In this document: positions 56,904-58,954 of the stretch, piece after piece
How the letters are laid out: each line of letters opens with the position of its first letter
How positions within the stretch are numbered: position 1 is the first letter of the stretch
Origin: Octopus sinensis
Taxonomy: Eukaryota
Reading direction: 5' to 3'
DNA: 64,000 nt
Assembly (NCBI RefSeq): GCF_006345805.1
Contig: NC_043015.1
Span: 12,710,001-12,774,000 of the forward strand
Notes under the pieces: generated by a model
Database searches by the model: none
Told to the model about the DNA's origin: nothing
Seen by the model: only the letters and a program-made list of their open reading frames with translations
Program-made: the position numbers and the translations under genes

Positions 56904-56912
56904 CTGCCGACA
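56904..56912 (-). CDS. Src42A: Candidate 9-nt cassette microexon TGTCGGCAG, adding V-S-A between YLQ and GKGR
   Basis: cacctag|TGTCGGCAG|gtaagtg. No AG for 92 nt upstream (56915-57006), including a U-rich tract and a UUAAC branch-like motif. Frame-preserving in phase 1. Same position and length as the AIA in Drosophila Src42A YLQAIAGKGR (recalled from memory). Confidence 0.6.
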
Positions 56913-58954
56913 CTAGGTGAGTAACCATCATCATACGTCATTAATCAGGGTGATTAGAGAATTAAAAGAAAATAAAAAAAAAGAAAAGAGAATGTAGTTA
57001 AAAAGGCTTGTCCACACTTTACAAAACAAAAGAAATAAAATGGCATAAATAATATGTGTTTATATGTCTCATAGACTGTTTGTGAAAAGATGAGAAATAA
57101 GTCATCAGTTTAAGTTTATTGGATAGAACTTGAAAAATAATTTTTTAAAAAAAGGCTTTTTTTTAAATGAATGATAAGGGATATTTAAATTTTTAATAAA
57201 ATCTTTCAGTGAAAGAAATCTTGAACCTGAAATATTGGAAATATTTTGATGATGAAAAAATAAATATAGTAAAGATATAAGTTCAACAAAGAACAATATT
57301 TGAAATTAGTTTCAAATATTAATTAATATATCTGATTTTGCAGTTATAAATCATTTTAGCTGAAAAGCAAAGCGAAAATGATACACTGATATCGAAATAA
57401 GATACATCATTGAGAGAGAAAGAAAGAGAATTTGGGGAGATGAGGGAGAAGTGAAGCACAATGGGAGTGAACAAAAACGTCTATGGATATGCAGATACGT
57501 TACATGTTTACATGAATAAATAAAACTTTAGCATATTCAATTAATTTATGAAGTAACTAAAGTAATTGATACATGTCCAAAGTAAACTGTTTCCAATTTG
57601 TGATGCAAGGAAATTAGTGAGAGGTTATTCTCTCTGTTTAGAGTTAAAATTCTAGTTTATTTGTACACTTAAAATCACTTAATGATTGGTGTATCGCAAG
57701 AGTATATAATGAAATCAATTTGAAAAATGACTCAAATTTTAAATGTTAACATCCCAAATTGTTTGTTCTTATCAACAACTGAAGACAAGCACTATTAAAG
57801 AGAACTGTTACTTTGATGTGGAACTATACCACAAATATTGTCATTCGCTAGTCTGGATTAATAAATATTTAGTTTCTTTATATGAAGTAATCTAATGTAG
57901 AGCCCTCAGTCTCTAGTCCTAGAACTTACATATCTACGTATCTCAATCATTAACCTGACAAAAATTCAAATTGAATTTGAATTGTTTGGGTTTTATTTAT
58001 ATCTTCAGTCTAGGATAATCTAACAAAACCACAAGCATAGCTTTTTTCTCTTCAGAAGTCTAAACCAAAATTGAAGACTGATATAAAATGCTTTTATCTA
58101 GATATTTTCCATTTGAGATAGATCAGCAATTTTGGATATCTGCATGAACTTTTGACACCTTTTACAAATGATGCATTTTATGTCATTATGCAATCGATTA
58201 TGAAATGGGAATAAAAGATAATTTCCTAATAGGTAGAATAAAAAATAATAGAAGTCATTTCTTTATTTTTGCTTAACTGATTTATCTATAGCTTAGCCCA
58301 ATACCACTGATATAATACAAGCTCACAGTGCCACATTTCAAAGGTTGATACTTTATTCTCTCAGCTGCTAAGTATTAACTGAAAACATGGAATAATATTT
58401 GTTTCGCTTCTCATTATATAATATGTTATCAACAATTTATGCTGTGATAACATTTTTCAGTGATAGTAAACTGGAGAGCTAGTTATGTGACATCAGATTG
58501 ATATCCAACATTAGGACTGAGAGGTTTGGTTATTTAGTAGTTTCTCCAGTAAATATGATTTAATTAGTAGCAGTTGTTACTAGAACTTAAGGAGAAAATT
58601 CTGTCTTGCCAATCCTGGTAATGAGTTCTTTATTTCCTATTTAGTGAAATGAAAACTTCTCTTATTAGGCAAAAACATGATGGAGGCAGGTGCAACAAAG
58701 AATGAGTATATACATAGGAAGCCTGGAATTCAAATCAAAGCTATGTCAAAATTAAAGTTCAAATAAATGTTTCTATTAAATTTGTTGCTTAAAAATGAAG
58801 CAAAATGTATTTGTTTTTGTTTAAAGAGAAAATATAAATATCAAATGACTATGAGAGTTAATATGACGGAATGCTCAAAACATTTTTAACAATGTAGAAT
58901 ATAAAAAAAAAAGCCTCAATCAAGTGTTGCAAAATTAACAAAGAAAAAAATCCT

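Follow-up and report, generated by a model that had tools for sequence, protein, structure and literature searches.

Evidence for an alternatively spliced 9-nt microexon in the kinase domain of Octopus Src42A, with a differently spliced counterpart in flies

We analyzed a 64,000-nucleotide (nt) stretch of the Octopus sinensis genome (hereafter, the window; assembly GCF_006345805.1, contig NC_043015.1, positions 12,710,001 to 12,774,000 of the forward strand). Its minus strand carries the 3' half of the Octopus gene for Src42A, a tyrosine kinase of the FRK/Src family, and a candidate 9-nt microexon encoding Val-Ser-Ala (VSA) lies in one of the introns. Six-frame translation, tblastn against fly Src42A and splice-site reading defined four minus-strand exons, A to D (coordinates are those of the window, and slashes mark splice junctions). 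The upstream constitutive exon A (61991..62149) encodes (G)TMDPKDF...GSLLDYLQ plus the first base, G, of a split codon, and its 3' end reads ...TTACAAG (61991) with the donor AAG/GTAATT. The downstream constitutive exon B (35624..35802) starts with GAAAGGG (35802) and encodes ...HRDLAARN...DFGLARVIK. The intron that holds the microexon runs from one to the other (35803..61990, 26,188 nt, phase 1), interrupting the protein between ...LLDYLQ and GKGR.... Exon C (30423..30579) encodes ...VPYPG, and exon D, the last coding exon (28074..28285), encodes MTNAEVL...DYKEAAVVR followed by the stop codon TAA. The window covers the kinase domain from TMDPKDF to the C-terminus only, and the C-terminal 234 residues translated from its exons were identical (234/234) to Src42A of Octopus vulgaris, O. 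sinensis and O. bimaculoides. Full-length relatives of this kinase carry the Pfam domains SH3_1, SH2 and PK_Tyr_Ser-Thr. On the strength of its sequence, the gene is Src42A, an FRK-type Src-family kinase, and the range of the gene is 203 kilobases (kb) in O. bimaculoides and 119 kb in Argonauta hians.

The microexon (TGTCGGCAG, 56904..56912, minus strand) lies between exons A and B, at a distance of 5,078 nt from the former and 21,101 nt from the latter. As a cassette exon does, it has an AG acceptor (56913..56914, cctAG/T) and a GT donor (GTAAGT, 56898..56903, with the GT at 56903-56902) of its own and intron on either side, and the minus strand here reads ...cctttttaactacattctcttttctttttttttattttcttttaattctctaatcaccctgattaatgacgtatgatgatggttactcacctag/TGTCGGCAG/gtaagtgactg.... 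Placed between exons A and B in phase 1 (G/TG TCG GCA G/GA), its bases (G)TG TCG GCA G give Val-Ser-Ala and the first base of a Gly codon, and the protein reads YLQ-V-S-A-GKGR. No other 9-mer of the intron that is flanked by AG and GT could encode VSA, and no repeat copies of the microexon region were detected elsewhere in the window.

With the last three exon bases, the donor reads CAG/GTAAGT (extended, CAG/GTAAGTG), which is a perfect match to the U1 consensus and the best-scoring donor of the intron, at 13.4 bits, whereas the three constitutive donors of the window score 5.1–10.4 bits. Upstream of the acceptor is a zone of 92 nt free of AG (AG-exclusion zone; 56915..57006), the next AG being at 57008-57007. 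Within this zone are a branch-point-like (yUnAy) TTAAC (56997..57001), whose candidate branch A at 56998 lies 85 nt upstream of the acceptor AG, and a U-rich polypyrimidine tract (56964..56992) with pyrimidine at 28 of 29 bases. No UGC (TGC) motif was found within 100 nt upstream of the acceptor. An original prediction, made from the letters of the window, had named this acceptor, exon, donor, AG-free zone, TTAAC and U-tract and the lack of UGC, and all of them were recovered to the base. Other yUnAy matches are nearer the acceptor, i.e., CTAAT at 56957 and CTGAT at 56948. An exon of 9 nt would be too short for normal exon definition, for which the perfect U1-complementary donor probably compensates. 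The distal branch point (TTAAC, or the nearer CTAAT or CTGAT), together with the U-tract and the AG-free stretch, would then leave 56914-13 as the first usable AG.

The extent to which chance could produce such signals was estimated from 1000 dinucleotide shuffles, with thresholds picked after seeing the candidate. A donor closing an in-frame, stop-free AG...GT unit of 3–27 nt, and as good as the one observed, appeared in 5.4% of the shuffles, and the combination of such a donor, an in-frame unit and an AG-free zone of at least 92 nt appeared in 0.1%. For the longer donor string CAGGTAAGT, the 26,188-nt intron has a single occurrence on its sense strand and none on its antisense strand, with ~0.07 occurrences expected from base composition. 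The original prediction had allowed for roughly one perfect donor by chance, a figure that suits the shorter G/GTAAGT. The same intron holds 21 AG-free zones of at least 92 nt. It also holds weaker in-frame, stop-free AG...GT units of 3–51 nt with a donor of at least 5 bits, 60 of them in sense and 52 in antisense orientation. Taken on its own, the DNA is suggestive for the microexon, not decisive, and transcript evidence decides.

A second splice-like unit was noticed in the same intron, cag/TTTATGATG/gtaagtg (51296..51304, minus strand), which would encode VYD. A 21-nt version of it (51296..51316, minus strand) has an 89-nt AG-free zone and a UGC nearby. Both versions were rejected, as no counterpart was found in any retrieved isoform or transcript, and other in-frame candidates of the intron likewise matched none of the retrieved isoforms.

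To retrieve full-length Src42A proteins we used a 392-residue query composed of the fly SH2 domain and linker (which match SRC42_DROME) and the window kinase exons with VSA. Two earlier, shorter protein queries gave only matches below ~1.75 times the query length, with no full-length isoforms, and were hence uninformative on the insert. The top match (P0136) is an open reading frame (ORF) on a 2,157-nt Logan transcript contig (L001, run SRR24189500) from a cephalopod other than that of the window. Its junction is CAAG/TGTCAGCAG/GAAAGG, one synonymous base apart from the window. A second inclusion protein (P0269) is encoded by contigs L004-L008 from five runs, in every one of which the junction is CAAG/TTTCAGCAG/GAAAGG, and one of these runs, SRR3011300, is from a whole animal of Sepia pharaonis (Table 1, PMC5541922). 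Inclusion contigs were thus obtained from six runs and at least two other cephalopod species, and the inclusion junction foreseen in the original prediction, with the 9 nt between CAAG and GAAAGG, is present with synonymous changes in L001 and L004-L008.

The 90% identity cluster of P0136 also included Octopus and Argonauta isoforms as members. In O. sinensis, isoform X1 (XP_029648313.1) has VSAVV at the junction, X2 (XP_029648314.1) reads YLQ-VSA-GKGR, X3 has VV, and X4 (the same as O. vulgaris CAI9736548.1) has no insert. The isoforms of O. bimaculoides were similarly varied, with YLQ-VSA-GKGR in XP_014775612.1, VV in XP_014775613.1 and XP_052830635.1, and no insert in XP_052830636.1; Src42A of Argonauta hians has no insert. 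The product predicted from the DNA, YLQ-VSA-GKGR, is therefore borne out by the RefSeq models X1 and X2 of O. sinensis, by XP_014775612.1 and by the six cephalopod contigs. The microexon is already annotated in the RefSeq models for Octopus and is, in this respect, a known feature; our literature search found no paper describing the octopus VSA microexon.

The inclusion coding sequences of cuttlefish were 82.7% identical to the window, with 108 of the 124 differences at third codon positions. The microexon in L004-L008 differs from that in the window at two wobble positions only and still encodes VSA. All three DNA versions (TGTCGGCAG, TGTCAGCAG and TTTCAGCAG) encode VSA, against 45% differences at third codon positions elsewhere in the coding sequence. 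The microexon is frame-preserving, and this pattern of substitutions indicates purifying selection on its peptide. Given the conservation of VSA between octopus and cuttlefish, the microexon dates at least to the coleoid ancestor.

Skipping was seen in the same material. The coding sequence of another protein (P0268), recovered from six other runs including SRR3011302, equals that of L005 base for base minus the 9 nt, and the exon is therefore alternatively used. Skipping contigs numbered 85 + 9 + 6 and inclusion contigs 5 + 1, counts that serve as a rough guide only.

Several observations weigh against this account. Inclusion in Octopus itself rests on RefSeq models, which are pipeline predictions, and the newest O. 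bimaculoides annotation gives VV and no-insert forms only. The last 25 nt before the microexon acceptor are merely 52% pyrimidine. The decapodiform 9 nt end in CAG and could in principle be an acceptor extension there, not a cassette. An AlphaFold model of O. sinensis X2, based on a 40-sequence alignment, was poor (mean predicted local distance difference test score, pLDDT, 44.8) and is used for no claim. It could also be argued that the site is a chance look-alike that is never spliced and that the VSA isoforms are annotation artefacts. The 60 in-frame candidates that the intron holds by chance would fit this explanation, as would an equally good donor in 16.7% of the shuffles and the loss of the VSA form from the newest O. 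bimaculoides annotation. De novo contigs from the six runs, however, show the same insert and the same junction in at least two other cephalopod species with synonymous changes only, and an annotation artefact of one genome cannot produce the same insert in the transcripts of other species. We therefore reject the look-alike explanation, which we regard as barely credible. Given these transcripts, we consider it very probable that 56912..56904 is a real, alternatively spliced 9-nt cassette microexon of Octopus Src42A and that both forms are made.

The VV insert, annotated in isoforms X1 and X3 of both O. sinensis and O. bimaculoides (X2 of the latter has no insert), would be a second event at this junction. 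It would be encoded by the hexamer TTGTAG (35803..35808, minus strand), which abuts exon B, and the junction of the VV form reads CAAG/TTGTAGGAAAGG. The two bases before the hexamer in the window are TG and not AG (35803..35810, minus strand), and no 6-nt AG/TNGTNG/GT exon that could account for VV was found in the intron. Either the VV isoforms use a non-canonical TG acceptor, or they are artefacts of annotation.

The octopus exon might be neuron-specific and dependent on the eMIC domain of Srrm234, as most neural microexons of bilaterians are. Its size, its preservation of the frame and its location in a signaling kinase fit this class, and the wide spacing that separates its distal branch point and U-tract from the AG is similar to the layout of eMIC-dependent exons. 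In addition, runs of the same cuttlefish project differ in isoform, with inclusion in SRR3011300 and skipping in SRR3011302. UGC, the motif through which eMIC acts, is on the other hand absent from the 100 nt upstream of the acceptor, and we consider eMIC dependence possible but doubtful. Fly Src42A is itself listed in the eMIC/Srrm234 program, with an eMIC-dependent exon of 27 nt at chr2R:6009798-6009824 of D. melanogaster (Torres-Mendez et al., PMC8797185, table S3). The octopus exon is thus similar to that program in size class and in belonging to a signaling gene, but the fly exon is a different one, of 27 nt as opposed to 9 nt, and the octopus exon has no upstream UGC. Src42A isoforms of Lucilia (P0183 compared with P0142) and Musca (P0371 compared with P0151) were found to differ by the insert TSQFAGIFE in the SH2-kinase linker, between NLCKPCVQ and IEKPVTEG. 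This insert is probably the 27-nt eMIC-dependent fly exon, and its location in the SH2-kinase linker ruled out the 27-nt exon as a counterpart of the octopus microexon.

When the protein is aligned with chains of c-Src crystal structures, the VSA insert falls on the KGETG loop, and compared with c-Src the octopus loop is two residues longer with VSA and one residue shorter without it. The KGETG segment is the αD-αE loop of the kinase C-lobe, into which the 'kinase insert' of receptor tyrosine kinases falls. Being exposed at the surface, this site accommodates changes in length and can take part in docking. Based on the alignment to c-Src and textbook kinase anatomy, we infer that inclusion would add Val-Ser-Ala and lengthen the αD-αE loop by three small residues, and that skipping would leave YLQ-GKGR. 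The terminal G of the exon restores the Gly codon on inclusion. The effect on the kinase would likely be a tuning of regulatory or partner contacts of the surface loop, with catalytic residues unchanged. A similar case is generally known from vertebrate c-Src, whose N1 and N2 (n-Src) exons are likewise tiny, frame-preserving cassette exons of a Src-family kinase that alter a surface loop. N1, however, has 18 nt and lies in the n-Src loop of the SH3 domain, whereas the octopus exon has 9 nt and lies in the kinase C-lobe.

Flies carry an insert at the same position. Isoform A of D. melanogaster Src42A (NP_476849.1, SRC42_DROME) reads LLEYLQAIAGKGRSLKMQT, i.e., YLQ-AIA-GKGR, as the original prediction had correctly stated. 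Among brachyceran flies the insert is AIA, VIA (Teleopsis), VLA (Zeugodacus) or ALS, and isoforms with no insert are annotated as well. The fly and octopus inserts agree in codon position and phase, in their length of 9 nt, in encoding three small residues and in alternative use. Their splicing differs. In D. virilis the genomic sequence reads ...CTGCAAG/gtatgt...(~128 nt)...ttttag/CAATTGCAG/GCAAATGTCGT, and the 9 nt adjoin the downstream exon (ttttag/CAATTGCAG/GCAAATGT, also given as ttttag/CAATTGCAG/GC...). In Teleopsis dalmanni, where the intron is ~137 nt, the sequence is ...CTACAAG/gtatgt...ttatag/TAATTGCAG/GTAAAGGACGT, with the 9 nt again adjoining the downstream exon (ttatag/TAATTGCAG/GTAAAGGA). 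Since in both flies the 9 nt run directly into the downstream exon and are bounded by two AGs, the fly insert is a tandem alternative 3' splice site (two AGs 9 nt apart) and not a separate exon. Unlike the octopus, flies thus have two acceptors on a constitutive downstream exon and a short intron, with no free-standing exon. The expectation that AIA would prove to be a separate 9-nt exon failed on this point, as it is an alternative acceptor extension in D. virilis and Teleopsis.

The distribution of the insert was surveyed in annotated isoforms and in the Logan transcripts retrieved, and no three-residue insert was found in ~30 non-cephalopod mollusc, annelid-like, nemertean and brachiopod orthologues. 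These included a chiton, Liolophura (X1/X2), and the gastropods Babylonia (two loci, X1/X2 each), Haliotis (two species), Patella, Nucella, Pomacea (X1/X2), Littorina (X1/X2), Batillaria, Lymnaea, Physella and Bradybaena. The bivalves were Dreissena (X1/X2), Mercenaria, Ruditapes (X1/X2), Pecten, Argopecten, Saccostrea, Crassostrea, Mactra, Solemya, Mytilus (four), Mya, Potamilus and Sinanodonta. Other lophotrochozoans were represented by a cluster with a member from the annelid Paralvinella, by the nemerteans Lineus and Tubulanus and by the brachiopod Lingula. No VSA-like unit was found in the orthologous introns of Pecten maximus (974 nt) or Haliotis asinina (295 nt). Among the matches listed, the insert was also absent in nematoceran flies, beetles, moths, bees, hemipterans, crustaceans and chelicerates. 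In many insects the intron at this site is only a few dozen to ~90 nt long and reads through in frame.

These results bear on whether octopus VSA and fly AIA descend from one ancestral protostome 9-nt microexon, as the original prediction had proposed. Under such deep homology, the fly would have lost the downstream intron, so that the exon became fused and its terminal CAG turned into a second acceptor, and elsewhere the exon would have been lost or left unannotated. The phase-1 intron after YLQ (...CAAG/gt) is indeed common to octopus, D. virilis, Teleopsis, Pecten and Haliotis, so that its position and phase agree across the octopus, the scallop, the abalone and the flies. The two inserts have the same length of 9 nt, end in GCAG and encode small residues (VSA compared with AIA, VIA, VLA or ALS), and annotation often misses microexons. 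The shared GCAG is, however, largely forced, as the final G preserves the Gly codon, and the AG is dictated in octopus by the donor consensus and in the fly by the acceptor. Also against a common origin are the tandem acceptor in two brachyceran lineages, the listed nematocerans, other insects, crustaceans and chelicerates without the insert (several with introns too short for the exon), the ~30 non-cephalopod lophotrochozoan orthologues without it (several of them X1/X2 sets, along with many Logan transcripts), and the two introns of Pecten and Haliotis that lack a VSA-like unit. We consider deep homology very unlikely, and the proposal of an ancient protostome microexon is not upheld, as the fly 9 nt form one piece with the downstream exon and the intervening lineages surveyed, including the annotated annelid, bivalve and gastropod isoforms examined, are without the insert. 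One ancient exon would need dozens of losses, and a gain in coleoids with a separate, independent gain in Brachycera is thus far more parsimonious. The octopus exon would then be a coleoid-wide cassette microexon that parallels the fly event and has a separate origin.

Small length variants are seen at the same YLQ/GKGR junction in other animals, namely GTQ, GMQ, GTQAQ, GKGN, GKGT, +V and +Q. They derive from P0138, P0168, P0276, P0278 and P0280 (ants), P0159 (psyllid), P0171, P0137 (Corethrella) and P0215 (Dreissena), with GTQ, GMQ and GTQAQ in the ants and GKGN in the psyllid. Those that start with G (GT...) look like downstream alternative donors, which ants and psyllids apparently use at this junction. 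Small indels derived from splicing seem to cluster at the YLQ/GKGR junction. Isoform differences of 2–8 residues (DSGTVVGT, VE, VN) also occur in the activation segment, at ARVIK-EDEYEAR, the junction of exons B and C (35624/30579). They were seen in Liolophura (P0298/P0187), Babylonia (P0300/P0191) and Dreissena (P0301/P0215). The inserts that start with V (GTN) look like alternative donors, and none was present in the retrieved Octopus isoforms.

The rest of the window contains remnants of transposons and other elements. A fragment of a reverse transcriptase (RVT_1, below the Pfam cutoff; 58905..59159, plus strand) lies antisense within the intron of the microexon. Long plus-strand ORFs occur in a run (31739..33385) in the intron between exons B and C and had no Pfam match. 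Downstream of the Src42A gene is an ORF for a DDE_3 (Tc1/mariner-type) transposase (7748..8251, minus strand; Pfam E = 5e-10), and long (TA)n and (CA)n microsatellites are distributed throughout the window.

As a gene feature, the VSA exon is an ordinary microexon that annotation pipelines had already caught. That an exon of 9 nt in a 26-kb intron could be spotted from raw sequence shows that the pairing of a perfect donor with a long AG-free zone can serve as a signature in the introns of cephalopods. Our literature search found no paper on this signature, nor on the parallel between octopus and fly at the Src42A loop. Coleoids and brachyceran flies each gain three small residues at an identical codon of Src42A, through splicing mechanisms that differ between them, which looks like parallel evolution acting on the αD-αE loop. 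A more far-reaching reading, to which we give a very low probability, is that the Src42A αD-αE loop is a repeated target of regulated three-residue lengthening by unrelated splicing mechanisms, with a cassette microexon in coleoids, a 9-nt tandem acceptor in brachyceran flies and, apparently, alternative donors in ants and psyllids; its stronger version is that the octopus and fly inserts are homologous. If true, such recurrent lengthening would point to a common functional switch in Src42A, and the parallel gives a testable handle on the role of the loop, which might lie in regulating the kinase or in the docking of partners in neurons.

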